IMG/VR virus record: IMGVR_UViG_3300037010_002844
Span: 245,434-309,433 of that record
Direction: 5' to 3' (one strand)
DNA length: 64,000 bases
Part shown: positions 205 to 44,067 of the stretch, piece after piece
Layout: every line of letters begins with the position of its first letter
Position numbering within the stretch: position 1 is the stretch's first letter
The notes under the pieces: model-generated
Told to the model about the DNA's origin: nothing
The model's input: only the letters and a program-made list of their open reading frames with translations
Databases searched by the model: none
Position numbers and translations under genes: made by a program

Positions 205-3200
205 ATGCCGGCTTCATCGACCCAACTTCGTAAAGCACCTCAGCGCAGATTTGAGGACTACACCCTCAATCGAATCGTCAGTCCTGAGGTGGGCCTGTAT
301 CCGATCGCAACTTCTGCGATGACGGAAGTTCCGGGCTGGACAACCTCGGGACCGACGGGCGGGGCTCCTGGCGCTGATGACGGTCCGTCGATCAATCTCG
401 ACCTGGGATTTGTCTTTCACTTCGACGGCATCGACTACACTCAAATTGAGGTGACCCCCAACGGCGTCGCCGTGTTGATCGATCCGGCCACGAGCCCGAT
501 ATCAGGTACAGTCATCGGTGACTGTACGTTTGTCACCTACGACAACTCTTCGATCAGGTCGCCTTTCAACGCCACTGCCAATCACGTGTTGCTGTGTGTC
601 TGGTTTGACGACCTTCGCAACCTGTACAAGACAGGAAAAGATTTCCGCGATGATTTTCCGTCTCAGATCACGGATCAGCAACTGCTATATCAGCAGCGTG
701 GCCTTGATCTGCCGAACGAGCGTTACAATGCCGTCGAGTACGGCATCAAGTATGCCTATGTCACGACGAAGGAAGGCATCCGGGCGACGGTATTTCGTTG
801 GAACTCATTGAGCAACTTTTCGTTCGCAGGTTCAAAGCTGCGCTTTGATCTTGTCATCTACGAAAACGGCGTCATCGAGTATCGCTACCACACGCGCATC
901 GGCATCTACAAGACCGACCCAGTGCACCTAGAGTCTGCGACCATCGGCGTCTTCCTGAACAACGATCCCAATTCGCCGAGTTACTGGCGATTCCGCGACT
1001 TCACGGTCGGGATGGGTTACCGTGACCAGGATCGCACGCCGTACAGGTTGGGCGGTTACGTGTACGATTCAACGTATGTCGATGGCCTATCGTCAGTGCC
1101 GTACACCGTCAACCTGACGCCGGAACTTCACTGGCCCGGTCTCAACAGTGAAGGCTGCGTAATGCGGTTCACACCGCCGCAGAACCGTCGCAAGATTCTG
1201 CCCCGTAGAGAGCTCGCTCAGCGTGACGCAAGAACCTCGTATCCTCTGGCGGCCAGGACTGGCGACGGGGACAGGTTGGGCACGCGTTTGAGTGCGTTCG
1301 ATGATCGTCGAACGTTGACCTACGTTCCCGGCGTGGTCGTCGACTATCCGACGACAATTCCTCGTCGTTATGCTGACTCTGAACCAGGAGCACCTGACAG
1401 GATCAACCTGTTCGGTAGCATGGAGGTCACTGGCAGCATCATCAAAGGAAATGCTGACACGTTCATTGGCAATGAACCCAAGCAATTCATCACGCCATTT
1501 TCTGACCATGAACGACCCGAGCAGTCCAGGTCGAGCCAGGTATACTATGCCACGGGCTCAAACGTCGACATCTTCGGCGATAACCTGAAGGAACCGCTGT
1601 CAGCCAAGACTCAGATTAAACTCGAGCTACCGATTGAATATGCGACCTGGATGTTTGAGACAACGTCCAGCATCTATTACTACAATGTGCAGTCACGCGG
1701 GTGGTACGTTCCTCGAAACGTTGTCACGAATCTTGGACACGGAAATTACGACCTGAGTGATCCGCTGGCGGCGCTCGATTACCTCGTCAATCCTGAAGAT
1801 GCTCGAGGTTTCGGTGCGCTCGGCAACTCCATCTCATCTGGATCACACAACCAAAATCTGGGACAGCAGACAGACGCCGTGTTGGGATTCAGTAGCCCAC
1901 CACCGTTCAATCTCAACCTCGACAAGCTAAGCAGCATTCTGTCAAGGCAGTACCCGAATAGTGTCCAGACGAATCCGAAATACCTTGCGACCTCAGACGA
2001 GCAGTTTGAACTGCCCATCAACCACCCATTCTTGATCGAGAAGGTCATCTTCGAGATTCCGATGACAATGGGTCCTGGCTGGTTCAACGATAGAACGACC
2101 ACAAGCGTTCCGATTACTTCAGCCTATAACGGTGGCATCAACTTCTATACGTACGACTTCGCTGGCCCTGCAATCACGGTCTCGCTCTTCAACCAACAGC
2201 AAGCCGGGCCCAACACGTACCGCGACCTGATCACGTCAGGAACCGTCATCCCGTTGGGTGATAACTACGCAAACGTCAAGGCGACCAAGGTCTACTACTA
2301 TACCGGCATAGGCATTCTGCCAGCCTGGATCTTCTCTCCTGAAGGCTTCGTCTCATACAACGCCACGCCCTCGAGCGTTGTGCGACCTGATGGTGACAAC
2401 TACTTCACGGGTAGCATCGAGATTCCGACCATCGCGGGCGTTTCAAATGGAATTATTGCAGAGTACACGTCTATCTTTGCAGACCCTGACATCGAAAGCA
2501 ACCGCGTCAATGTGTTGAAGTGGTTGACGAGCCCAACCGTCGACGTCAATTCGACGACCGAGATCTTCGAAGGCGGTAGCGGCATCACTGTCGTCAAGGA
2601 CGTTGATCCATTTGGTCGAGCCGCGACCGGGTTCAACCCCTCGGGACGCTCAGTATTCGGAAAAGAGTTCGTTACCACTCAGACGTCTATCAACTCACGA
2701 GGACAGTTCAAGAATCCCCTCTTCATCTCTGCCTCGACCACCTCATCGACGAGCTCACTGCCGCAGAACTACCAAAACGCGATCAATGATCCCAACTTCG
2801 TTGCCGCAGTCATCTCTGCCATCAACGTCGGCAGCACCTACCCGTCACCCTATCTGGTCCTGCCTGGCGATAAGTTGACGTTGGCGCTTTCCAAGATGCG
2901 ACCGTCGATCTTCACAAACGGTCAGGACAATTTGACGTCGTCGTTGCCGGTGGATTACTTCACCGCATCACTACGTCACGATGTGACACTGCCGACGGGG
3001 ACCATCAAGATCACGTTGTACGGCACGTTGCTGCGGGAATCAAGGGAACGACACAGCACATTGAACCAGCCACTGAGTTCTGACACAATTCACGAGACGA
3101 TCGGCGATGATCCTGTACTCGATCAGTACAACGTAGAGTACCCTGGTTCGTACTGGGGGACGTACACGGACGACTACATCACCGGAAGCATGTTGTCGAT

Positions 3201-4473
3201 CGTCTCGTCAGGAGGCAGCCGCTACTTTGTGACCGGCTCGCGGGGCAAGGTCTTTCAGAGGTTGGATGCTCGTTCGCAGCCCGCGCCCGCCTCTTCTCCA
3301 ATCACCTCGTACGAGGTTCAGCAGAACAACTCGAAGTCATTCAGATTGCAGCCGTGGTACGAGCGAGCAAACCGGCCCATTGTCACTCAGCTCCTGTCTG
3401 ATTCTGAGACATACTATGATTCTATGGTTCCAGACCTCGCGCAGTGCCTCAAGGCAAGTGGCAATGGAATCTGGATCTTGAAGAATGGCGACGTTCCACC
3501 CGCGCCGTTTGACTCGACGAAAGTCAAGGTAGGTCCAACAGTGGGCTACCTCTATTTCAACAATCAAGTGGACTCGGCTAGCGAGACAATCGAATCCCTC
3601 GCTAACGGCGTTTGGACGTGGTCTTATCCATTTGAGCCGCGCTACAGCGACATTCCTCGCTCAATAGGCATGTCAAAGTCGCTGGTGGCTGAGCGCGAAT
3701 ACTCGAGTGGGTCAAACATGATCTCTCCGATCACCCCGCACGAAATCGACACGTTCTATCCAATCTTTGTTGGCACTACGCCTCACGTTGGATTCTTTGA
3801 AGATTATCTACACTTGGCATTGAATCAGTTCGCCATCTCCTGGCAGATCGCTGCTGACGTTGACCTTCGAAGATCGTCGCCCTATTACCTCACCAGCTCA
3901 CTGTCGCCAGATGATATGATCAGGGTCATGTATGGCTATGGTGACATCAACACCATGGTGCCCCAAAAGGTCACCGGAAGTTGGCCTAACGTCACGCCAG
4001 ATTATACGTCATCGTCAGTGGCGGGTTGCAACAATCAACCTGCTTGGCGTGACCAAGAAATTGCAAAGGGCCTATACGCAACGTACCTGGTCGGTCCGAT
4101 CATCAGAGGTTGGAAATACGGGCTCTATAACGGACTGCCGGTCAAGAGCCACGCTACGTTCCGTCGTGATCGTTACGGTCAAAACCGTGATATGCTCGAG
4201 CAGCGCCCGTTCACCAAGTACTACCAGGCGACCGACACCGCCGACAATAAGGCTGGAGTTCTACGCAGTGCGGTGCAAGTTACCTTCGTCGACTCACAAG
4301 GCAGGATCACACCGCCAGAAAACACCTGGTCGCAGAACTTGAGCACTGAGGCTACATCGTCGATGCCGTACTTTGACGGTCAAGCCGTGAATCGCCCAGA
4401 CCCCAACCCGGCGGCGCTAAACCAGTCGATCATCACGTTCACGTCCAATGTCTTTGGCAACTTGACGGTCTAA
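205..4473 (+). CDS. Large virion structural protein (tail/baseplate-associated), 1422 aa
   Basis: Long ORF rich in T/S/G/P/Y with recurrent TGS/SGS motifs typical of huge-phage structural proteins; no catalytic motif recognised. Confidence 0.6.
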   Translation: MPASSTQLRKAPQRRFEDYTLNRIVSPEVGLYPIATSAMTEVPGWTTSGPTGGAPGADDGPSINLDLGFVFHFDGIDYTQIEVTPNGVAVLIDPATSPISGTVIGDCTFVTYDNSSIRSPFNATANHVLLCVWFDDLRNLYKTGKDFRDDFPSQITDQQLLYQQRGLDLPNERYNAVEYGIKYAYVTTKEGIRATVFRWNSLSNFSFAGSKLRFDLVIYENGVIEYRYHTRIGIYKTDPVHLESATIGVFLNNDPNSPSYWRFRDFTVGMGYRDQDRTPYRLGGYVYDSTYVDGLSSVPYTVNLTPELHWPGLNSEGCVMRFTPPQNRRKILPRRELAQRDARTSYPLAARTGDGDRLGTRLSAFDDRRTLTYVPGVVVDYPTTIPRRYADSEPGAPDRINLFGSMEVTGSIIKGNADTFIGNEPKQFITPFSDHERPEQSRSSQVYYATGSNVDIFGDNLKEPLSAKTQIKLELPIEYATWMFETTSSIYYYNVQSRGWYVPRNVVTNLGHGNYDLSDPLAALDYLVNPEDARGFGALGNSISSGSHNQNLGQQTDAVLGFSSPPPFNLNLDKLSSILSRQYPNSVQTNPKYLATSDEQFELPINHPFLIEKVIFEIPMTMGPGWFNDRTTTSVPITSAYNGGINFYTYDFAGPAITVSLFNQQQAGPNTYRDLITSGTVIPLGDNYANVKATKVYYYTGIGILPAWIFSPEGFVSYNATPSSVVRPDGDNYFTGSIEIPTIAGVSNGIIAEYTSIFADPDIESNRVNVLKWLTSPTVDVNSTTEIFEGGSGITVVKDVDPFGRAATGFNPSGRSVFGKEFVTTQTSINSRGQFKNPLFISASTTSSTSSLPQNYQNAINDPNFVAAVISAINVGSTYPSPYLVLPGDKLTLALSKMRPSIFTNGQDNLTSSLPVDYFTASLRHDVTLPTGTIKITLYGTLLRESRERHSTLNQPLSSDTIHETIGDDPVLDQYNVEYPGSYWGTYTDDYITGSMLSIVSSGGSRYFVTGSRGKVFQRLDARSQPAPASSPITSYEVQQNNSKSFRLQPWYERANRPIVTQLLSDSETYYDSMVPDLAQCLKASGNGIWILKNGDVPPAPFDSTKVKVGPTVGYLYFNNQVDSASETIESLANGVWTWSYPFEPRYSDIPRSIGMSKSLVAEREYSSGSNMISPITPHEIDTFYPIFVGTTPHVGFFEDYLHLALNQFAISWQIAADVDLRRSSPYYLTSSLSPDDMIRVMYGYGDINTMVPQKVTGSWPNVTPDYTSSSVAGCNNQPAWRDQEIAKGLYATYLVGPIIRGWKYGLYNGLPVKSHATFRRDRYGQNRDMLEQRPFTKYYQATDTADNKAGVLRSAVQVTFVDSQGRITPPENTWSQNLSTEATSSMPYFDGQAVNRPDPNPAALNQSIITFTSNVFGNLTV

Positions 4474-4476
4474 ACG

Positions 4477-5745
4477 ATGCCGACGAAGGACGACGCAGCG
4501 CACTCATTCTTTGTGTTCGTCAAGGACGTCAACACGGGCAAGATCTCGCGTGTTGCCTTTCCGGGCGCCGTGCAGGTCGGCATGGCCGGCAATCCAACCG
4601 AACTGTCTGTGTTGGGCAGTCTGTCTGTCAACGTGACGACGTACCGAACCGCGCCAGCGAACAACGGCATCATCAACCTGAAGCCGTACGACACCGTCGC
4701 CTGCATTATTAACGCATACACACCGTCAACAAACATCATTCGCGTCAACCTGCCGGCCAAGCCCAGGGATGGTCAACTTCACTTCATTAAGGATGTTTCT
4801 GGCAGCGCAGGCAACGCTAGAATCGACGTCTACGGCAGCGCCGATGGTAAGACGCCGATCGATGGCAGTGCGTCACCCGTCAGTATGACTACACCATACG
4901 ACTCGTGTGGCTTTGTCTGGTCTGGCCCGGAACGCATCTGGATCCTGTTGACGAAGACTGGCACCAGCGGGGGCGGGGGTGCGACCAATGGTGCTGGTGG
5001 AGGAGCCGCATCGCTTTATCCTCTCGATTCACACGACAAAATCTTGTGGAAGTTTGACGACACTACACCAGGAGGTCCGTACCTCAACTATGGAACTATA
5101 GTTGGCTATGATGCAACGCAGCTTGGCACTGCAGGTCAAGATATCCCGTGTCAATTTGGTCGAGTGACACAGTGCGTTTTTCACTCTGGTTGGTCGTACC
5201 TTGGCGGCCCAGCTGGAACATCAGGTAACCTATCACCGACGGGTAGCTTCACTGTTGCTGGTTGGTTTAAGCTCTTGGCCGCATCTGATACGTTATTGTT
5301 CTACAAACGGTATCGCATTACAGGGTCGGCTTACGGCTGGTTTGCGCCATTTGCCACTGTGTTGATGACCTGGCACTCTGACAATACCACGTCATTGTAC
5401 CTCACATTGGGCCCCGACGGAGCAGGCACACGTTTTCAGTTTGACACGCCCAAGATTATCCCGTATGGAGAGTGGGTCTTCGTAGGTCTGACGTTCGATC
5501 AAGCTGACAGCAAGTATCGAGTGTATGTCAACGGTAATCTCGTCTATACGTCACCCGCATTTGGCAGTAGCACGATCGATTGGAACAATGCGGGAGCAGA
5601 CGCTTGCGGGAGCTGGTGCACCGGGTCAGATCCCAATAACAGCGAGTACCCGAACACTTACGTCAATGCCTTGCGCGTGTGCGACGTGGCACGACCAGGT
5701 TCTTGGTTCACCGCCGTTTTTGCAGCAGAGAACGGTCGCTACTAA
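4477..5745 (+). CDS. Tail fibre/receptor-binding protein with C-terminal LamG (ConA-like) domain
   Basis: Gly-rich linker then WKFDD...FTVAGWFK...GEWVFVGLTFD...RVYVNG LamG pattern; N-terminal LP..P.DG....IKD..G.A motif common in phage fibres. Confidence 0.7.
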   Translation: MPTKDDAAHSFFVFVKDVNTGKISRVAFPGAVQVGMAGNPTELSVLGSLSVNVTTYRTAPANNGIINLKPYDTVACIINAYTPSTNIIRVNLPAKPRDGQLHFIKDVSGSAGNARIDVYGSADGKTPIDGSASPVSMTTPYDSCGFVWSGPERIWILLTKTGTSGGGGATNGAGGGAASLYPLDSHDKILWKFDDTTPGGPYLNYGTIVGYDATQLGTAGQDIPCQFGRVTQCVFHSGWSYLGGPAGTSGNLSPTGSFTVAGWFKLLAASDTLLFYKRYRITGSAYGWFAPFATVLMTWHSDNTTSLYLTLGPDGAGTRFQFDTPKIIPYGEWVFVGLTFDQADSKYRVYVNGNLVYTSPAFGSSTIDWNNAGADACGSWCTGSDPNNSEYPNTYVNALRVCDVARPGSWFTAVFAAENGRY

Positions 5746-6037: not shown

Positions 6038-7309
6038 TCAGCGGCCGATCTTATTCAGGATGGTGTCGTAGGACGAGGCGTTGAGCTTTTCCTTGGACGC
6101 CATCAACTCACACCACTCGCGGGCATTGGCCGCACGGCTTTCCCACAAGTTGAAGTAGGGCGCCGCCCAATCGTTGGACTGCATCACCTTCTCAGCGAAG
6201 AGCTTCCGCGAACCCGCTGCGTAATCACGCCAGGCCTCGAAGTTGCGATCGACAGAGATGAGATACTCGCGCACCGCAGCCTGCATCGAACGCAGCTCCC
6301 CAGCCACGTCGGCCTCGACCAACGGGATGACGTCATCAATCGTGCCGCGGATGATGGCCTCGACTGCGGATCGCTTCGAGACAGTCACTAGGTCCTTCGC
6401 TTTGGAAGACAGGACCCAGGCCCGAGACTTGACCTTCTGACGGTTGAAATTCGAGTCAACGACGACCGCGCCTTCCAACTTTGATGGGTCCGCCGCCTCA
6501 ACAAACGCTGCCAGCGCCTTCGGTTCCGACAACTTCCAACGCTGCGGCCGGTTGACGTGCTGCAGTTGCAGCTCCTCGATGACCGATTCATTGCCCGATG
6601 CCGTGTGACGAATCGCCAACAGCGTCACACGAGGCTCGTCATAGCGAACCACGATGCGGTTGTGCGGGCTCGTTAGCTCGAAGACGTACGTCAGTTCCTT
6701 GTTGAGATGAACGACCTGATCGAAGTCGCTCGGAACCCAGTCTAGCTTTTGGCCCGAGTTCGCCTCACGGGTCTCGATCAGGGCCTTGAAGAACAGGTCG
6801 CGGAACGTCATGTTGCCGATCGACATGTCATCCTTGCGGATCGGCAGGTCAGCCTCGGGAACCGACCGCGTACCGACGTGCCACTGACCATGAAGTTCGT
6901 CCCAGTAGACGATGCAACACGTGCCATCGAGCTTCTCGTAGACGCGGAGCTCGGGATCCGACCAGTCGACCCCCGCGGCCGCGACATCGCCGTGGTTGTA
7001 GAAGCGATTCATGGGCCAGGCCAACAGCTCGCAGTCGCCTACGACGCGGTCGCGCCACTTTGCTGTCGACAGAGGCGCGCCACCACGCCGGGCCTCATCG
7101 TGGAGGAACTGCTCCGTCTGCTCGCGAGATGGACGAATCACCATGCCGCGGCACTGTTCCATCAAGGCATTGCCCGACTTCGCCAAGATCTGATCATAGT
7201 TGAGTGAGAACTTATCGAAGCGCGAGTTGGGCCGCGCACAGACACCGTGCTCGTCCTCGAGCTCACGGAACGTATGGGAACGCAGGTACTCCAACACCAA
7301 CGGCTTCAT
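6038..7309 (-). CDS. T4 Rnl1-like RNA ligase
   Basis: Nucleotidyltransferase motif I EKLDGT, RFYN, FELTSPHNRIVVRY, EGAVV, KVK; own promoter upstream. Confidence 0.88.
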   Translation of the reverse strand: MKPLVLEYLRSHTFRELEDEHGVCARPNSRFDKFSLNYDQILAKSGNALMEQCRGMVIRPSREQTEQFLHDEARRGGAPLSTAKWRDRVVGDCELLAWPMNRFYNHGDVAAAGVDWSDPELRVYEKLDGTCCIVYWDELHGQWHVGTRSVPEADLPIRKDDMSIGNMTFRDLFFKALIETREANSGQKLDWVPSDFDQVVHLNKELTYVFELTSPHNRIVVRYDEPRVTLLAIRHTASGNESVIEELQLQHVNRPQRWKLSEPKALAAFVEAADPSKLEGAVVVDSNFNRQKVKSRAWVLSSKAKDLVTVSKRSAVEAIIRGTIDDVIPLVEADVAGELRSMQAAVREYLISVDRNFEAWRDYAAGSRKLFAEKVMQSNDWAAPYFNLWESRAANAREWCELMASKEKLNASSYDTILNKIGR

Positions 7310-7386: not shown

Positions 7387-8010
7387 ATGCAATCCAAGAC
7401 GAAACTCTTGAAAGAGTGCGTCGAGGGTCTCGTCCTGGAAGTCATCGGCCCGCGAAAACTGCGTGTGTTCGACTTCGATGACACTCTGGCGCAGACAGGT
7501 TCCAAGGTCTGGGTCATTCGACCCGATGGTTCGCGGAAGTCATTGTTGCCGGGAGAATTTGCTGTCTACCAGCCTACGCCCGACGAGCAGTTTGACTTCA
7601 CTGAGTTTGGTCAGTTGATCGAGCCCAAGGCCTACGTCTGGACGGGCCGCGTCCTAAAGAACATCTACGACAAGTACGGACCTAGTGGTGTCGTCATCCT
7701 GACAGCACGCCACGCGACAGCGCCCATTCATCAGTTCCTGCATCAAGCAGGATTTGACGGGATTGAGGTCATTGCTCTGGGCACCTCCAACCCGCAGGCC
7801 AAAGCCAATTGGATCGATGCCCGCATCGTGCGTGATGACCTGCACTTGATTGAGTTCTTTGATGACTCGAGCAAGAATGTTGAGGCAGTCCGCGCCCTGC
7901 AGGACAAACACCCTGACGTCAAGGTGATTGCGCGACACATTGTGCACCAGTCGAAGCCGATGCCACACCCATATCCTCCGCTGCAACCGCGATCAAGGAA
8001 CAAGATTTGA
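7387..8010 (+). CDS. HAD-superfamily phosphatase with N-terminal leader motif
   Basis: VFDFDDTL (motif I), ILTAR (II), K (III), FFDDS..N (IV); probable start MQSKTKLLKECVEGLVLE. Confidence 0.8.
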   Translation: MQSKTKLLKECVEGLVLEVIGPRKLRVFDFDDTLAQTGSKVWVIRPDGSRKSLLPGEFAVYQPTPDEQFDFTEFGQLIEPKAYVWTGRVLKNIYDKYGPSGVVILTARHATAPIHQFLHQAGFDGIEVIALGTSNPQAKANWIDARIVRDDLHLIEFFDDSSKNVEAVRALQDKHPDVKVIARHIVHQSKPMPHPYPPLQPRSRNKI

Positions 8011-8280
8011 TTGCGTAGATGCCGTTAGAGGTTAGACACAGCGACCACTGATCTTCTGCGCGGTTGAGTACGATGAATAGCCCGCCGGGATCATCGCTCG
8101 GCTGCATTTGCATTTCGTCGCGCAGTATCTGGTAGACTTTGGCATCGTCTCAACGAGGACGATCATCACTGTATCATGCTTCAAGCGAAGCGATGGGTGA
8201 CGAAGTCCGCCTCTGTCAAGCGCTTGACGATGATAGCCTCGGCATGAGTCCTCTCATACATGTCGATGAATCTGACCAGA

Positions 8281-9260: not shown

Positions 9261-9878
9261 TTACCGTAGAGTCCGGAACAACTCGTTATTGTCGCCGCAG
9301 TAAGCCTTCAGCTTGTCGAACCAGGCCCGCGACTTCTGCTTGAACATCACGGGTGCCTTGGTTTTCTTGTCGTTCTTGCCTTTGCAGACGACGCCTTCAA
9401 AGGTCATGCCGGGCAGCGAACCGTCCCGAACGCTCTCTATGAAGGCTTCCGTCACTTCGCCTTCGTACAAGACCTTGGCGTGGTCGAGGTGACCAAACAA
9501 CTTCAGGTAGAGCTCAGGCTCCAGAATGCCGGCGCCGAAGGGCGCCACGTCGATCAGGGTTACCGTCTGGTCTTCCTTGAGGTCGTGCATGCCGAAGGCA
9601 CTATTGGGCCCCCAAAATTCGAAGAAGCAGCAGGCCGAGACCCACTTCGATTCCTTGAGCACCTCGTCGATGCCCTTGCCGTACTTGTCGTTGATCAGTC
9701 CGGGCACCTTACCGAAGACAGGATCGGATGCGTCCACTAGCCGCGTGCGGGTGCCGAACTTGTAGAAGCCTTTTTTGCGCGACCACTCGGCGCGGACGTT
9801 GGACCCGTCGAGCTTGTCGAAGGCGACGATTGGGACTCGGCACTCGGTGGCGTAGGGGATTGAGGGATATGATTTCAT
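9261..9878 (-). CDS. RNA ligase (compact Rnl2/Rnl5-like nucleotidyltransferase)
   Basis: YPSI...FDKLDGSN motif I, FFEFWG, FEGVVCK, MFKQK; start taken at MKSYPSI. Confidence 0.8.
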   Translation of the reverse strand: MKSYPSIPYATECRVPIVAFDKLDGSNVRAEWSRKKGFYKFGTRTRLVDASDPVFGKVPGLINDKYGKGIDEVLKESKWVSACCFFEFWGPNSAFGMHDLKEDQTVTLIDVAPFGAGILEPELYLKLFGHLDHAKVLYEGEVTEAFIESVRDGSLPGMTFEGVVCKGKNDKKTKAPVMFKQKSRAWFDKLKAYCGDNNELFRTLR

Positions 9879-10019
9879 GACTTTCTTCACAGAAAAACAT
9901 TCGTCGCCATCGATGTCATCGATAGCCCTAGATCGTCGGTGGTACGATACCACTACGCCACGATCACAAAAGCTTTCACATGTAGGCCATTGGGGACGGC
10001 CTTGGTGGTGATTACTTGC

Positions 10020-11050: not shown

Positions 11051-11139
11051 TGCGGAAGGTGCGAGAGTCGAACTCGCAATAGGCTCATCACCTATGTCGG
11101 TTTTCAAGACCGATGGGCCTGCCAATGCCCAAACCTTCC
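11051..11139 (-). tRNA. tRNA-Ser(UGA)
   Basis: Loop CTTGAAA, long variable arm. Confidence 0.85.
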
Positions 11140-11911: not shown

Positions 11912-12298
11912 TCAAATCAACTTCAGGTTACCTGTGATCCTGTCGAGCAGCGCACCCTCGCATGGTCCGAAGGCTGCACAAGTCAATGTCGGAACTCCAT
12001 TGAACTCTGTCCTTCCGGCGTCGATGATGGGATGCACCTCGACGTCCTCAATTTCTGCCTTGAAGATGAGGTCCTTCAAGGCATCTTCCGAATCCACACC
12101 CACCACGATCTTGGTGAAGGAACCCGACAACCATGTGGCCTCTGCGGGTGTCAGCTTGATGACGACCTCGTCTCCACGTTGCGCTTCGTTGTTGTCAACG
12201 AGAAACTTCATCGAAGCATGGGCGACCTGGGCGGCCAATTTGCCCTTTTTCATGTTCAGGTCCTTTCGTACGACGATGACCTGCTTCACGTCACTCAT
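11912..12298 (-). CDS. pth2: Peptidyl-tRNA hydrolase, Pth2 family
   Basis: KQVIVVRKDL.M.KGKLAAQVAHAS...KIVV...IDAGRTE...T..A.GP...ITG.LKL; GGAGG SD before start. Confidence 0.93.
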   Translation of the reverse strand: MSDVKQVIVVRKDLNMKKGKLAAQVAHASMKFLVDNNEAQRGDEVVIKLTPAEATWLSGSFTKIVVGVDSEDALKDLIFKAEIEDVEVHPIIDAGRTEFNGVPTLTCAAFGPCEGALLDRITGNLKLI

Positions 12299-12456
12299 GG
12301 TGTCCTCCGGCTTGTCAAGGATCGGTCTCGTGCCTTTCGGCACGGGCTTCCCCCTCGGCTCTTCGCCGAATCTCGGACGCTTGCGCGTCTTGGGAGTTGA
12401 TAGGTCTTGCGGGCGCATAACCGGCCTTGATAAGTATCGGAAGTTCGAGGTTCAGT

Positions 12457-14592: not shown

Positions 14593-15054
14593 TCAGGGAA
14601 TGTCATCGAGGGCTGACTCTGCATCAACTTCGGCCCTGATTTCATCACGAACCTCCTGCAAGATACGACCCAACCAATTCTGTCCCTGCCCGCGACAAAC
14701 GCCCCAAAACTTATCGTTCCAGTGGTTGCCCTCGATGAGCTCAGCATCCTCAGTCGCCAGCAACATCTCGCGGAGCAGCGGGTTCTCGAACTTGGCCTTG
14801 ACGAACTTTCGCATCAAGTCGACCTTGACCTGGTCCCAATCCTCGCGGAGGGTGACAGAGCGGCCGAGCTTCTTGGCCTCGGCCGCCGTCTTCGACTTGC
14901 GCACCATCTCACGTTGCGTCTCGTCTAGGGTCTTGGCAGCCTGATAGGCATGCTCAACCGTGGCATAATGCCGGCCGTCGACGATGATGGTGGATGGATG
15001 AAAGTTCGACAAGAACGCGAACTCATTGATGAACCTGTCGATCTTTGCTGACAC
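14593..15054 (-). CDS. NADAR family (YbiA-like) hydrolase
   Basis: FLSNF...Y.TVEHAYQA.K...AKKLGR...W...M...AKF...LL.T...L.E...D.FWG...G.N.LG..L..VR. Confidence 0.92.
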   Translation of the reverse strand: MSAKIDRFINEFAFLSNFHPSTIIVDGRHYATVEHAYQAAKTLDETQREMVRKSKTAAEAKKLGRSVTLREDWDQVKVDLMRKFVKAKFENPLLREMLLATEDAELIEGNHWNDKFWGVCRGQGQNWLGRILQEVRDEIRAEVDAESALDDIP

Positions 15055-15095: not shown

Positions 15096-15765
15096 TCACC
15101 AGTCACCCTTGAGCCACTTCGACAGGTTGTACTTCTGACCTGTCCTATGGTCAGTGACCAGGTCGTCCTGTGTCCGGTAGGTTCGTACCTTGTCGCCGCG
15201 CTGACCTGAGCCCACCTGTTGCTTGCGCTCGTTGGAGCGCTCGCGGTAGAGCCGTTCAGACTCAGCCTCGTAGAGGCGAGCGGCCAAGACCTTGAAGGCC
15301 ATCGCCCGGTTCTGGTGCTGCGAGCGCTCGTTGTCAATGCGAACCTGAAAGCCGGTGGGCTTGTGGACCGCGATGACGCACGACTCTGTCTTGTTGCGAT
15401 TTTGGCCGCCCGGACCCGAGCCTCGGGCAGTGGTGATTTCCACATCACGGGGGTCTAGTGCCTGGCCGATGACGGTGTCTGGGTTTAAGACCGCGACCGT
15501 CACTGTCGACGTTTGCACACGACCACGCTTTTCTGTCGGTGGAACGCGCTGCCACCTGTGCCCGCCGCCTTCATTTGCAAAGGTCTGCAGGGTTCCTGGG
15601 CCGGAGACAGAGAGCATCACCATCCCTGGTCGATCATCGATTACAGTCGCCTCAAAGACCCCTCCGGGCCGCCGCGTTGGCGTATGCCCGGAGCTGCTCC
15701 TGAACGAGAAGTCTTGCGTCCTCGCCGCCCTCGGCGGCCCTGATCTCGATGATGACAGTTTCCAT
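15096..15765 (-). CDS. Class I peptide release factor (short, lacking domain 1) expressed via a +1 programmed frameshift
   Basis: ORF1 METVIIEIRAAEGGEDA...RRGL ends at CTT-TGA; the +1 frame continues EATVID...EGGGHRWQRVPPT...GSGPGGQNRNKTES...ERSQHQNR...KVRTY. Confidence 0.9.
15652..15666 (-). promoter_or_regulatory. prfB-type +1 frameshift signal
   Basis: CGG AGG GGT CTT TGA G = internal SD + CUU UGA. Confidence 0.88.
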
Positions 15766-15766
15766 G

Positions 15767-16078
15767 TTAGTCCTCCACGGCAACGAGGATGCCGAAGACG
15801 GTCTTCCTCGTGCACCAACCGTTGATGTGGCCGTGATTGTTGCTGATCTGGTAGCGACCATCGCTGCCGATAGCTGACACCTTGTGAAGCATCTGGATGC
15901 CGTTGACCTTGCACAGGACAACGTCGTCAACCTCGACCAACGTTTCGTCCGTGACAGGGGCGACCGTGACCAGCTGCCCGCTGCAGATCCGCGGGACCAT
16001 ACTGTTCCCGTGTGGGCGAAACTTGACCGTCTGACCCTCACGTAGAGCCTGGACGTTGAAGAGAGATCAGTCTGTCAT
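15767..16078 (-). CDS. S24/S26-like peptidase-fold protein with in-frame TGA at codon 4 (readthrough or pseudogene)
   Basis: ATG ACA GAC TGA TCT...FRPHGNSMVP...D.VLCKVNG..LHKV. Confidence 0.65.
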
Positions 16079-16080
16079 GA

Positions 16081-16158
16081 TGGTTCCTGTTGAGATGGGA
16101 CTCGAATCCACGATTCCCCACGTATGAGATGGGTGCTGTTGCCGCTGAGCCATTGGGA
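16081..16158 (-). pseudogene. Degenerate tRNA with CAU anticodon
   Basis: CCCAT-CTCATAC-GTGGG; acceptor stem irregular. Confidence 0.5.
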
Positions 16159-16622: not shown

Positions 16623-16698
16623 TGGCGCGCCCGGCAGGATTTGAACCTACGTAAACTTGTTTCGTAGACAAGTGCCTCATCCACTAGGCTACGGGCGC
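16623..16698 (-). tRNA. tRNA-Arg(ACG)
   Basis: Loop CTACGAA, GCCA. Confidence 0.9.
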
Positions 16699-16707
16699 AT
16701 GATTTAG

Positions 16708-16792
16708 TGAGGTGAGTCGTAAACCGGGTTTGTTCACCCTAAGCGGGTGGACGATCATTCCTCTTGGTTGACAGTTACCTGTCCCCACCTCA
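16708..16792 (-). ncRNA. RNase P RNA 3'-domain fragment (P18-P19-P4' like)
   Basis: GACAG-GTAA-CTGTC, AGAGGAATGATCG, CACCC/GGGTG, AACAAACCCGGTTTA; closed by GAGGTGGG/CTCACCTC. Confidence 0.6.
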
Positions 16793-16799
16793 AAGGTTG

Positions 16800-16899
16800 A
16801 AACGCTTCACCTTCACGATCGGATTCGAACCGACGACCCAGTAGTTGGACACCACCTGCTCTACCAGACTGAGCTACGTCTCATGAGTTACTTACGTTT
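16800..16899 (-). ncRNA. AGUA/GAA-clamp element with tRNA-body cargo
   Basis: AAACG/CGTTT, AGTAACT...AGGTGAA; canonical D and T arms, scrambled anticodon arm. Confidence 0.65.
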
Positions 16900-16900
16900 C

Positions 16901-16986
16901 TGGTGCCAGTGGAGGGATTCGAACCCTCACGCTTGTGGGCGGCGGTTTTTGAGACCGCTGTGTCTGCCTGGTTCCACCACACTGGC
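16901..16986 (-). tRNA. tRNA-Leu(CAA)
   Basis: Loop CTCAAAA, ACCA. Confidence 0.9.
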
Positions 16987-17832: not shown

Positions 17833-17937
17833 TGAATTTTCACTTGCACGGAATCGAACCGTTCTACTCGCTTTTTAGGCAAATGTGCTACCGTTACACT
17901 AAGTCAGACGCGTTAGCGCCCAAGAGTTACTAACTCT
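17833..17937 (-). ncRNA. AGUA/GAA-clamp element with tRNA-body cargo
   Basis: GAGTT/AATTC outer stem; AGTA-ACT...AGT-GAA (compensatory change relative to ACC/GGT). Confidence 0.65.
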
Positions 17938-20087: not shown

Positions 20088-20185
20088 TAGTGGACCCGGC
20101 GGGATCGAACCGCCCTGTCGGGTGCCCGTAACCTCCTGACATGGAGGAACAGCAACACCGTGTATGCCCGTTACACCACGGGTCC
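20088..20185 (-). tRNA. tRNA-like RNA with elongated anticodon arm (GUC in apical loop)
   Basis: GGACCCG/CGGGTCC acceptor, normal D and T arms, anticodon arm about 20 nt longer than normal. Confidence 0.6.
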
Positions 20186-32143: not shown

Positions 32144-32376
32144 TACTCGTTGTCGTACTCGCAGTACGTGTTCTTGTCCCAATCCCAGTGACGGTCATCG
32201 TAGACCGACACGCCAAAATAGAGTGGACCCAGCTCCACATGGAATCTCAGACCTGGATGGTCGCCCTTCGTGGTGAATGAGAACCTGACCGAAAAGTCGG
32301 TCTCATTGTCGCGGGCGGCGTCGACCTCCACGTGTTTGTGGCGAGTGAACGGAACGTCGAATGCAATGGACTTCAC
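32143..32376 (-). CDS. Hypothetical protein
   Basis: 77 aa, coupled to ligase stop. Confidence 0.6.
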   Translation of the reverse strand: MKSIAFDVPFTRHKHVEVDAARDNETDFSVRFSFTTKGDHPGLRFHVELGPLYFGVSVYDDRHWDWDKNTYCEYDNE

Positions 32377-33731
32377 TGGGCCATCTCCTTGGCGAGGTAC
32401 GCCTCGCCCGCGGCTATCACCTTAGGATCCACGTCGCCGGGCGACCGAACGCGAATGTAGACTGGAAAGCGAACCTTGCCGTCGACAGTGAGCCCGTCCT
32501 TCGTCAGTGGGTCAGGTTGGCCTTCTACCTCAACGATCTTGCCCAACCAAGAGTCAGCCATCTCAAGCATGATCTCGGCACGCAGCTTGTCAGAGAAGCC
32601 CCCGCCCACGCGAGTGACCACGCCGTTGGGCAGCACCACGTTGAAGCCACCGAAAAGTCCCTCGCGTTTGGTACCGCGGCGACCCTCGTACCAGCCCACT
32701 ACGACGCCCTCGAAGGTCGTCACGGGCTTCAGCTTCAGGATGTTCCGCGAGCGGTCCCACTCGTAGGTGGAATCGAGCGTCTTCAGCATGACACCCTCGT
32801 ACCCCTCATTCATGCACTTGGCGAAGAAGGCCTTGAGCTCAGCCTCGTCCTTGGCCATGATGTGGGGCACCTGGCGCACACAGCCGGTGTTGACCATTTC
32901 GACCACGGTGGCGACCAGCTCGCAGCGGTCTGAATAGATGACCGTCGTCTCTTGGTCGATCCAATCGTCGACTGCCATCGCGTCGAAGACGTTGTAGAAT
33001 ATGTTGCTGTCGTCCTTCTTGTTCTTGGACGACATCAGGACACTACTGGACTCGTTCCAGTCCTCGCCCATCGCCTCGCCGTCGAGGACGACGTTGTCGT
33101 ATTCTGCGGCTTCCAACGCGGCCTTGATTCGCGGCAGGGTCTCGAGCTCGGTGCCATTGCGGGTGAAGAACGTGACCCTGCCGTCCTTCTTCACCGCGAT
33201 GCAACGCAGACCGTCAAGCTTGGGCTCCACGCGTACGGGATATGCGATCTTCTCGAGGATCTTGATGCCCTCGCCTTTGACGAAGGTGCTCTTCACCGAA
33301 GACGCCAGGGCAACGGCGAAGCTCTTGATGGTGCCAGGCCAGATCTTGTTGACCGTCGACTCCTGGACGCCGCAGCGCAGGTTCTTCAAGAGGATTCGAA
33401 GGCACCACTTCTGCTGGCGAGCGTCCATCAGCTGAAACGCCGCTGAGACCGTGAACTTGGCCTCGTTACCCGTCAACTTCCGCGACGATAGGTCGGGAAG
33501 GAGGACGTCGAGAAACGCCGTCAGCGTCTTGTCGTCGCCCACGGGGGCACTCGCCTGTGCCTGAGGCATCTTGAACTTGTTGACGTAGTAAACCATGTAC
33601 GGGTCCTGGGCCGCTGCGAAGACGCGGCGGAGCAGCTCGTTGTCGCAGTTGCGCTTGAGGATGTCGCGCTTCGCGTTTGAACCCGCGGTGGTCTCGAGAC
33701 TCTCCAGGATGTCGATGACGGTATCGCTCAT
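32373..33731 (-). CDS. lig: ATP-dependent DNA ligase
   Basis: EPKLDGLRC, VLDGE, VFD, EGVMLK, LKLKP, OB-fold VGGGFSD...RFP. Confidence 0.95.
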   Translation of the reverse strand: MSDTVIDILESLETTAGSNAKRDILKRNCDNELLRRVFAAAQDPYMVYYVNKFKMPQAQASAPVGDDKTLTAFLDVLLPDLSSRKLTGNEAKFTVSAAFQLMDARQQKWCLRILLKNLRCGVQESTVNKIWPGTIKSFAVALASSVKSTFVKGEGIKILEKIAYPVRVEPKLDGLRCIAVKKDGRVTFFTRNGTELETLPRIKAALEAAEYDNVVLDGEAMGEDWNESSSVLMSSKNKKDDSNIFYNVFDAMAVDDWIDQETTVIYSDRCELVATVVEMVNTGCVRQVPHIMAKDEAELKAFFAKCMNEGYEGVMLKTLDSTYEWDRSRNILKLKPVTTFEGVVVGWYEGRRGTKREGLFGGFNVVLPNGVVTRVGGGFSDKLRAEIMLEMADSWLGKIVEVEGQPDPLTKDGLTVDGKVRFPVYIRVRSPGDVDPKVIAAGEAYLAKEMAQ

Positions 33732-43240: not shown

Positions 43241-43341
43241 ATCACACCTTTCACCTGCTACCCCCGGATTCGAACCGAGGTCTTGCAGGTTCAAAGCCTG
43301 CTGTGCTACCATCACACTCGCATTTGGTTACTTGCTGTGAC
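43241..43341 (-). ncRNA. AGUA/GAA-clamp element with tRNA-Gln(UUG) cargo
   Basis: TCACA/TGTGA, AGTAACC...AGGTGAA; intact D, anticodon (CTTTGAA) and T arms, no acceptor/CCA. Confidence 0.7.
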
Positions 43342-43417
43342 TGGTGCGCGAGGGTGGAGTTGAACCACCGACCCCCAAGGATAATCCTTGGTGCTCTTCT
43401 GCCTGAGCTACTCGCAC
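43342..43417 (-). tRNA. tRNA with non-canonical anticodon loop (GA-TTA-TC)
   Basis: Intact body with ACCA; CCAAGGA-TTA-TCCTTGG. Confidence 0.7.
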
Positions 43418-43977: not shown

Positions 43978-44067
43978 TGGCTGCGTCGGAAGGAGTCGAA
44001 CCCTCATCCCCTCGATTAACAGTCGAGTGCACTGCCTCTCCGGCTTTACGGTTGTGCTACGACGCAA
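43978..44067 (-). tRNA. tRNA-Asn(GUU) with D-loop insertion
   Basis: Loop CTGTTAA; extra CCG-TAAAGC-CGG hairpin in the D-loop. Confidence 0.8.

Follow-up and report, generated by a model that had tools for sequence, protein, structure and literature searches.

The locus and its RNA element

The window, by which we mean the whole 64-kb stretch of DNA that was analysed, makes up the end of the 309 kb IMG/VR contig IMGVR_UViG_3300037010_002844. Some 47 tRNA genes lie in it, every one on the minus strand, and they form two arrays (10.0-20.6 kb and 40.6-44.8 kb). A sigma factor and tail-fibre-like proteins are also encoded; most other open reading frames belong to no family. This gene content is the profile of a huge phage. 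Among the tRNA arrays, and likewise on the minus strand, lies an RNA repair and translation module (6038-7309, 9261-9953, 11912-12418, 14593-15054 and 32373-33731) consisting of a T4 Rnl1-type ligase, an Rnl2-like ligase, a PTH2 peptidyl-tRNA hydrolase, a NADAR protein and an ATP-dependent DNA ligase, which suggests that the module defends the phage tRNA pool against host anticodon nucleases.

The translation genes have some unusual members. ARAGORN calls a suppressor tRNA with anticodon UUA, reading UAA, at 43342-43417 and, at 20090-20185, a 96-nt tRNA whose anticodon appears to have four bases (gttc), both on the minus strand; together with the phage's release factor, these hint at stop-codon reassignment or recoding. 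The gene at 11054-11139 (minus strand) scores above the Rfam gathering threshold for tRNA-Sec (54.3 bits versus 47) and is tRNA-Ser(tga) according to ARAGORN; since its anticodon is not UCA, it is probably a long-arm tRNA-Ser. The release-factor-like gene is of class I, with the C-terminal part of PCRF and the RF-1/GGQ domain, and it is short, the source's gene call giving 175 aa; upstream of this, about 100 codons give a low-complexity translation. In relatives, about 440 nt separate the match to residues 1-49 of the release factor from the main match downstream, and stop codons occur in frame ahead of the conserved part; a miscalled start, a frameshift or an insertion could explain this.

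An RNA element of about 89 nt lies in the first array, 5 nt upstream of tRNA-Arg (Table 1). On the minus strand, 5' to 3', it consists of UGAGGUGGG, GACAG-GUAA-CUGUC, AACCA, AGAGGAAUGAUCGU, C-CACCC-GCUUA-GGGUG, AACAAACCCGGUUUA, CGA and CUCACCUCA, and AGAGGAAUGAUCG is found at 16764-16752. The first-pass annotation had listed a GUAA hairpin, J18/2, a P19 hairpin and a signature sequence in the order of bacterial rnpB, and all of these are indeed present, in that order, on the minus strand. The ends of the element pair over 9 bp, one G.U included (16792-16784 with 16716-16708), and the fold is more stable than those of shuffled sequences (MFE -33.5 kcal/mol, z -3.0 to -3.5). The identical element is present in two assemblies made independently from other sequencing runs, with 100% identity over 20.5 kb, so that an assembly artefact is excluded; for the same reason these assemblies carry no evolutionary signal.

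Table 1. Coordinates of the element, its neighbours and the phage genes compared with it
Feature	Position	Strand	Basis or remark
Whole element	16704..16792	minus	3'-terminal ~89 nt of a class A RNase P RNA gene (probable rnpB remnant); RF00010, model R1, positional orthology
Closing helix, 5' strand UGAGGUGGG	16784..16792	minus	homologous to J17/18 + 5' base of P18; fold, pairwise and multiple alignments
P18 hairpin, 5 bp, GNRA loop	16770..16783	minus	cmscan and cmsearch alignments
J18/2 + P2 3' strand, AACCAAGAGGAAUGAUCGU	16751..16769	minus	RF00010 and alignments to relatives
P19-position hairpin	16735..16749	minus	fold, alignments
CR-V / P4 3' strand, AACAAACCCGGUUUA = AACA-AACCCGGUUUA	16720..16734	minus	RF00010 and alignments
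P1 3' strand CUCACCUCA = 3' strand of closing helix	16708..16716	minus	cmscan to RF00010 P1 3' strand; fold
tRNA-Arg(acg), directly 3' of element	16623..16698	minus	orthologue of relatives' tRNA-Arg(tcg) abutting the rnpB 3' end
tRNA-Leu(caa)	16901..16986	minus	orthologue of relatives' tRNA-Leu abutting the rnpB 5' end
Acceptor-less pseudo-tRNA, directly 5' of element, in place of the rnpB 5' part	16815..16879	minus	Rfam tRNA 37.7 bits, model positions 5-66 only
Decayed tRNA-Met(cat)	16095..16152	minus	D-arm identical to L036 orthologue; acceptor strands CCUCCCA / CUCAACA not complementary
Release-factor-like gene (PCRF + RF-1/GGQ), synteny anchor	15096..15914	minus	source's gene call only 15096-15623
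Release-factor homologue, L034	9418-9564 + 10001-10678		L035, L036, L037 likewise split
Full-length rnpB, close clade, L034	8238-8592		RF00010
Full-length rnpB, close clade, L035	7879-8226		RF00010
Full-length rnpB, close clade, L036	7816-8173		RF00010
Full-length rnpB, close clade, L020	6074-6431	minus	RF00010
Full-length rnpB, L085	8363-8711	minus	RF00010
Full-length rnpB, L010	4462-4786		RF00010
Full-length rnpB, L007	4030-4350		RF00010
Full-length rnpB, L058	2904-3244	minus	RF00010
Full-length rnpB, L023	3890-4207		RF00010
Full-length rnpB, L087	3463-3786		RF00010
Full-length rnpB, L042	3892-4258		RF00010
Full-length rnpB, L065	7749-8036		RF00010
Full-length rnpB, L077	9394-9683		RF00010
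Full-length rnpB, L089	2415-2698	minus	RF00010
Full-length rnpB, L047	2048-2384		RF00010

How strong is the resemblance to RNase P RNA? In a search of the whole 64-kb window, RF00010 found the element on the minus strand at 21.2 bits (E 0.012), and the local search with this model (RNaseP_bact_a) that had been proposed as a check on the first-pass annotation gave 26.1 bits and an E value of 4.5e-7, as a 5'-truncated match; the lack of any local score, which would have spoken against that annotation, was thus not observed. The alignment takes in model positions ~283-367 only, that is, P18, J18/2, the 3' strand of P2, the P19 region and the 3' strands of P4 and P1. Because some 270 nt of the model are missing, the element scores far under the curated cut-off, a gathering score of 100 bits. 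R1, a covariance model of the 3' domain built in this analysis, scores it at 68 bits. Homology was mapped by semi-global pairwise and trimmed alignments, the gap of ~270 nt being too large for MAFFT. By semi-global alignment, the element is homologous to full-length phage genes from TTGAGGTG through the 3' end; its J18/2-P2 stretch AGAGGAAUGAUCGUCCA is identical over 17 nt to that of one such gene, from phage contig L034, and the stretch AGAGGAATGATCGTCCA is likewise identical between the two. P18 has the GNRA tetraloop that serves as a criterion for class A, although its lower stem is mismatched.

What is missing relative to a full-length gene, ~270 nt, comprises the 5' strand of P1, P2-P17, CR-I to CR-IV and the specificity domain. 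The specificity domain (P7-P14) and the L15 loop of P15 are absent, and the upstream flank is a pseudo-tRNA. The earlier statement that the window holds no 5' half agrees with our searches, as the RNase P models gave no other match at E <= 1 in the 64 kb and a fuzzy search for CR-I came back empty. The 38 nt upstream of the element resemble the 5' end of rnpB not significantly better than shuffled sequence does (shuffle p 0.17-0.69), and so lend no support to the idea that a true P1 5' strand has been retained. A megablast of the region against deposited phages gave no match, and an exact 18-mer of J18/2-P2 matched the source contig alone in IMG/VR.

Could the resemblance be due to chance, or the element be an unusual tRNA-like gene of the array? 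It does lie within a tRNA array, it is of tRNA-like length and it has a terminal helix. Neither ARAGORN nor the Rfam tRNA models make a call on it, however, which rules out a tRNA-like gene; the E value of the local RF00010 match, together with the collinear identity to the 3' ends of related phages' rnpB genes and the exact synteny described below, makes a chance resemblance hardly tenable.

RNase P RNA genes at the same place in related phages

With the release-factor gene, ~800 nt from the element, as synteny anchor, related loci were collected from IMG/VR and from metagenomes. For the metagenome scan the N-terminal parts were omitted from the anchor alignment, the L036 and L037 translations having in-frame stops. 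Six of the closest relatives, with release factors 68-74% identical, are L034/L029, L035/L066, L036/L015, L020, L092 and L134, and in each of them the class A RNase P RNA is complete, at 348-358 nt. Four of these genes (in L034, L035, L036 and L020) score 255-277 bits with the full Rfam model; those of L092 and L134 were identified by their CR-I and 3' motifs and by R1 scores of 82.7-83.8 bits. The relatives' rnpB lies on the tRNA strand, ~1.4-1.8 kb upstream of the release factor, and adjoins the flanking tRNAs with gaps of 2 nt.

In the relatives the array runs Gly, Thr(tgt), His(gtg), Glu(ttc), Leu(gag), Leu(cag), rnpB, Arg(tcg), Leu(tag), Met(cat) and, further on, the release factor. In the window, on the minus strand, the succession reads Gly, Thr(tgt), His(gtg), Glu(ttc), Leu(caa), a pseudo-tRNA, the element, Arg(acg), Leu(tag), a pseudo-tRNA-Met and the release factor. 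The matching tRNA orders place the element exactly in the rnpB slot. Ten genes are common to the window and the relatives in the same order, at 35-71% amino-acid identity; besides the release factor they are NADAR, PTH2, orf109, the Rnl2-like ligase, orf129, orf153, Rnl1, orf128 and orf140. Since so many genes are shared in order, these phages are true relatives and not chance carriers of a similar RNA. A comparison with related phages for an intact gene had been suggested with the first-pass annotation, and it thus turned up an intact class A rnpB at exactly the element's slot in the tRNA array.

The element shares with the rnpB genes of these relatives its slot between tRNA-Leu and tRNA-Arg, its position upstream of the release factor and its strand, that of the tRNAs, and its 3' domain is collinear with theirs and partly identical. 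It differs in that the relatives' genes are complete and without P19, whereas the window keeps the 3' quarter only, a pseudo-tRNA replacing the 5' part. The P19 hairpin, absent from the closest relatives, is found in the rnpB genes of other phage loci (L077, L007, L006 and L048), where it has GCAA loops. A comparison with bacterial class A RNA (RF00010; for example the M1 RNA of E. coli) gives much the same picture. The order and sequence of P18 with its GNRA loop, J18/2 (AGAGGAAUGA) and the 3' strand of P2 agree, as do the optional P19, CR-V with the 3' strand of P4, and the 3' strand of P1, but ~270 nt are absent, CR-V is damaged and P4 cannot form. The intact genes at the same array slot strongly support the suggestion that the element is what a deletion left of a phage rnpB.

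Lesions, self-closure and origin

The R1 alignment contains 48 viral 3' domains, 39 of them distinct. The element breaks four of the 13 columns that are invariant in the 38 other distinct domains, while 36 of 37 intact sequences break none. Two of the broken columns result from a 1-nt deletion in the ACAGAA of CR-V, one from a C-to-U change in the GCUUA of the 3' strand of P4, and one lies at the 5' edge. Against the invariant ACAGAACCCGGCUUA of CR-V and the P4 3' strand, the deletion and the C-to-U change are both unique among the 38 other 3' domains. In the lower part of P18, three pairs of the relatives' 8 bp stem have become one pair and two G.A mismatches. The element nevertheless keeps 17 of the 22 columns that are at least 90% conserved in intact genes, and P18 and P19 are still clean hairpins. 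Such preservation exceeds what one would expect of long neutral decay, the phages' proteins being only ~70% identical to those of L034, and it may reflect either a recent deletion or continuing selection.

Is the altered P4 strand perhaps a working variant found elsewhere? A scan for GGAATGA...AACAAACCCGGTTTA in one genome each from 185,579 bacterial and archaeal species gave two chance matches and no rnpB. The variant is therefore not a working type seen in these cellular genomes, and no host gene with this 3' end is present in the set. This result bears on another possible origin. In temperate phages, attachment sites in tRNA or tmRNA genes are usually 3'-terminal fragments of the small stable RNA gene, and the element, a 3'-terminal fragment of such a gene inside a phage genome, might be an attP-type copy of a host rnpB 3' end that restores the host gene upon integration. 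We consider this highly improbable. It resembles attP sites in being such a fragment, but differs in that there is no matching rnpB among the 185,579 species' genomes and no integrase among the neighbouring open reading frames, the nearest genes being the release factor, NADAR and PTH2; moreover, the lesions at invariant positions would inactivate the reconstituted gene, and the slot is orthologous to that of a complete phage rnpB.

The element is not alone in its truncation. The pseudo-tRNA directly upstream receives no ARAGORN call and its acceptor strands do not pair. Five acceptor-less tRNA-like elements, on the minus strand at 16815-16879, 16095-16152, 17848-17901, 43263-43318 and 43988-44038, match the internal tRNA model only (roughly positions 5-66) and have no pairable acceptor stem. 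With tRNA cores kept and ends replaced, they look more like products of recombinational truncation than of uniform decay. Pseudogenes and fragments of tRNA genes in phage arrays are thus the nearest likeness to our element: at least five acceptor-less remnants lie in the array, with the conserved interior kept and the ends lost. The element differs from them in deriving from rnpB and not from a tRNA gene.

Does the truncated form occur anywhere else? In 83 syntenic loci (560 kb), R1 found no second mini copy, its matches being two extra full-length genes and the window itself, and nhmmer found none over the other fetched loci, which include 89 further loci. A degenerate 3' motif gave 31 loci in IMG/VR, all of them full-length rnpB or chance matches and none a mini form, and the 14-mer of P18, GGACAGGTAACTGT, proved unspecific there, with no RNase P 3' domain among the matches listed. 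The sole other copies of the truncated form come from the same strain, as the 100% identical assemblies.

The first-pass annotation also offered a function, that of a decoy for RnpA. J18/2, the 3' strand of P2 and J19/4 belong to the part of the RNA that the bacterial RNase P protein occupies, and one can picture the remnant exapted as a small RNA that binds or titrates host RnpA or otherwise modulates tRNA processing during infection. The J18/2-P2 segment and both hairpins are unexpectedly well kept, the fold stands out from shuffled sequences (z = -3.0 to -3.5), a terminal helix of 9 bp would shield the RNA from exonucleases, and its place in a transcribed tRNA array would provide for its production and for its release by tRNA processing. 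But the mini form is a singleton, with none in the 83 syntenic or other fetched loci, it has unique lesions at invariant positions and a weakened P18, its closure is mostly inherited, and its neighbours are decaying too. Altogether, a functional small RNA seems unlikely. A more specific proposal, that the remnant is kept as a nuclease-resistant, self-closed mini-RNA that presents J18/2, P2-3' and J19/4 and binds the host RNase P protein or a phage factor so as to retune tRNA 5' processing, seems quite unlikely, though if it were true the phage would have turned a broken ribozyme gene into a protein decoy.

How much weight should be given to self-closure? The ends do pair over 9 bp, and to this extent the description of the element as self-closed holds; as a matter of design it was overstated. 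In intact relatives the base of P18 reads GAGGUG and the 3' end C[A/G]CCUC, the counterpart of the 5' closing strand being TTGAGGTG, from J17/18 and the 5' base of P18. When 3' domains of relatives are excised and folded alone, that of L036 closes by these sequences, while those of L034 and L020 fold preferentially into the complete 8 bp P18. In the element, lower P18 has lost pairing, which leaves GAGGUGGG free to pair with the authentic 3' strand of P1. Judged by this comparison, most of the closing helix is inherited sequence. It has 9 bp, against 5-6 bp available in the relatives, and the extra 2-3 pairs are weak evidence at best. Underlying the closure is the resemblance of the P18 base (GAGGUG) to the lost 5' strand of P1, which lets the ends of the element pair. 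In L035, the P1 5' strand is GAGGCAGGG and the P18 base GAGGUGCAC; by analogy, the lost P1 5' strand must have resembled GAGGUG. Because of this likeness, a deletion between short direct repeats is a plausible origin, and it would give exactly the junction observed.

A further suggestion was a split RNase P RNA, of which the element would be one half, the 5' half lying elsewhere in the phage genome and assembling with it in trans. The terminal helix and the GNRA-looped P18 could in principle dock onto a separate catalytic fragment, and the covariance-model scan covered 64 kb of the 309 kb contig. The CR-I / P4 5' strand (GAGGAAAGUCC), on the other hand, is absent both from the window (RNase P models, with no second match at E <= 1, and fuzzy search) and from the 309 kb contig (motif scans, which covered the 245 kb outside the window). 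These scans took in the whole viral collection, the entire contig included. The CR-I motif AGAGGAAAGTCSGRGC was found in 64 contigs and AGAGGAAARTCCGGG, which permits the change compensating the element's C-to-U, in 65, and the source contig is in neither set; nor is it among the viral contigs with the canonical 3' motif. Lacking a CR-I motif on the contig, a split gene with a recognisable 5' half is very unlikely. The CR-V deletion in the 3' strand of P4 is seen in no working gene, and the relatives have one-piece genes in this very slot. We therefore do not retain the split-gene suggestion.

We conclude that the element is a 5'-truncated, non-functional pseudogene of a phage-borne class A RNase P RNA gene, a reading to which we assign a probability of roughly 0.78. 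Four marks of a pseudogene are found here: homology and positional orthology to the intact genes of related phages, loss of indispensable parts, relaxed constraint, and a truncated form that is not conserved elsewhere, this last point being judged without a close but non-identical relative, as the other copies are 100% identical. P4, formed by CR-I and CR-V, is the universally conserved active-site helix of RNase P. With no P4 5' strand there would be no catalytic core, and the element would not be a ribozyme. Naturally reduced RNase P RNAs do exist, such as the type T RNA of Pyrobaculum (RF02357) and the minimal mitochondrial RPM1 RNAs, which have little beyond P1, P4 and P18. To our knowledge, all reduced but active RNase P RNAs keep both strands of P4, with CR-I and CR-V. 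The element is like them in its small size, its P1-like closure and its retention of P18, and unlike them in having the 3' strand of P4 only, and that damaged.

A scenario for this pseudogene is that an ancestral huge phage had a complete rnpB between tRNA-Leu and tRNA-Arg, as its relatives still do, and that a deletion or rearrangement, plausibly between the short direct repeats at the P1 5' strand and the P18 base, removed the ~270 nt from the P1 5' strand through P17, including CR-I, the P4 5' strand and the specificity domain. The few lesions at invariant positions suggest that the deletion happened late compared with the divergence from the relatives sampled. No promoter or terminator dedicated to the element was found, and as it lies so close to tRNA-Arg it is most likely co-transcribed and freed by tRNA end-processing. 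The remnant is probably still transcribed as part of a polycistronic tRNA precursor. It would come free as an inert spacer RNA once host RNase P has cut at the 5' end of tRNA-Arg and the tRNA-like element upstream has been processed at its 3' side.

RNase P RNA genes in the tRNA arrays of huge phages

Viral contigs with a full-length class A RNase P RNA embedded in a tRNA array number at least 15; they reach 463 kb in length, and the RNAs score 146-277 bits. Beyond the close clade, 11 further viral loci have full-length RF00010 matches (146-255 bits) directly between tRNA genes. In L065 the gene at 7749-8036 is flanked by tRNAs at 7670-7740 and 8037-8111, and in L007 the gene at 4030-4350 by tRNAs at 3949-4020 and 4357-4429; gaps between phage rnpB and tRNA genes are often 2-10 nt. 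Several of the phage genes are unusually short, at 288-325 nt.

Some array-embedded genes depart further from the standard structure. In L058 (2904-2973) and L086 (3983-4052) P18 is replaced by a few nucleotides, and the phage RNase P RNA of L078 (1995-2055) is without P18 and J18/2; these are natural P18-less variants. The 385 kb huge-phage contig L067 (IMGVR_UViG_3300009709_000001) has, in a tRNA-rich region, a GOLLD RNA (RF02032, 212 bits) at 5070-5488 on the minus strand, and also an RNase P-like gene below the Rfam gathering score, with CR-I at 3073-3088 and its 3' domain at 2784-2856.

Have such genes been described before? In the searchable full-text literature we found no paper linking RNase P RNA with phage genomes, and a blastn search of 50,697 deposited phage records gave contaminant-like matches only. 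Phage-encoded RNase P RNA thus appears to be undescribed, with the reservation that absence from the sources searched is not proof of novelty. One deposited record deserves separate mention. Microcystis phage MaAM05 (L333 = MW495066.1), deposited as a complete 274 kb phage genome, has an unannotated partial rnpB match at 112323-118478. We considered it as a cultured jumbo phage with rnpB and rejected it: the match sits among fabI, engB and mtgA, so that the region looks bacterial and the record may be chimeric or contaminated.

By itself the element is most likely a dead gene fragment, and an ordinary one; its value is as a pointer to the rnpB genes of huge phages. These are natural compact RNase P RNAs for study. 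The phage of the window indicates that rnpB can be lost, and it offers a natural knock-out for asking when a phage needs an RNase P RNA of its own. If the phage rnpB genes are active, huge phages bring with them the ribozyme for 5'-end maturation of their own 40-60 tRNAs, and the known viral take-over of translation would extend to tRNA processing.
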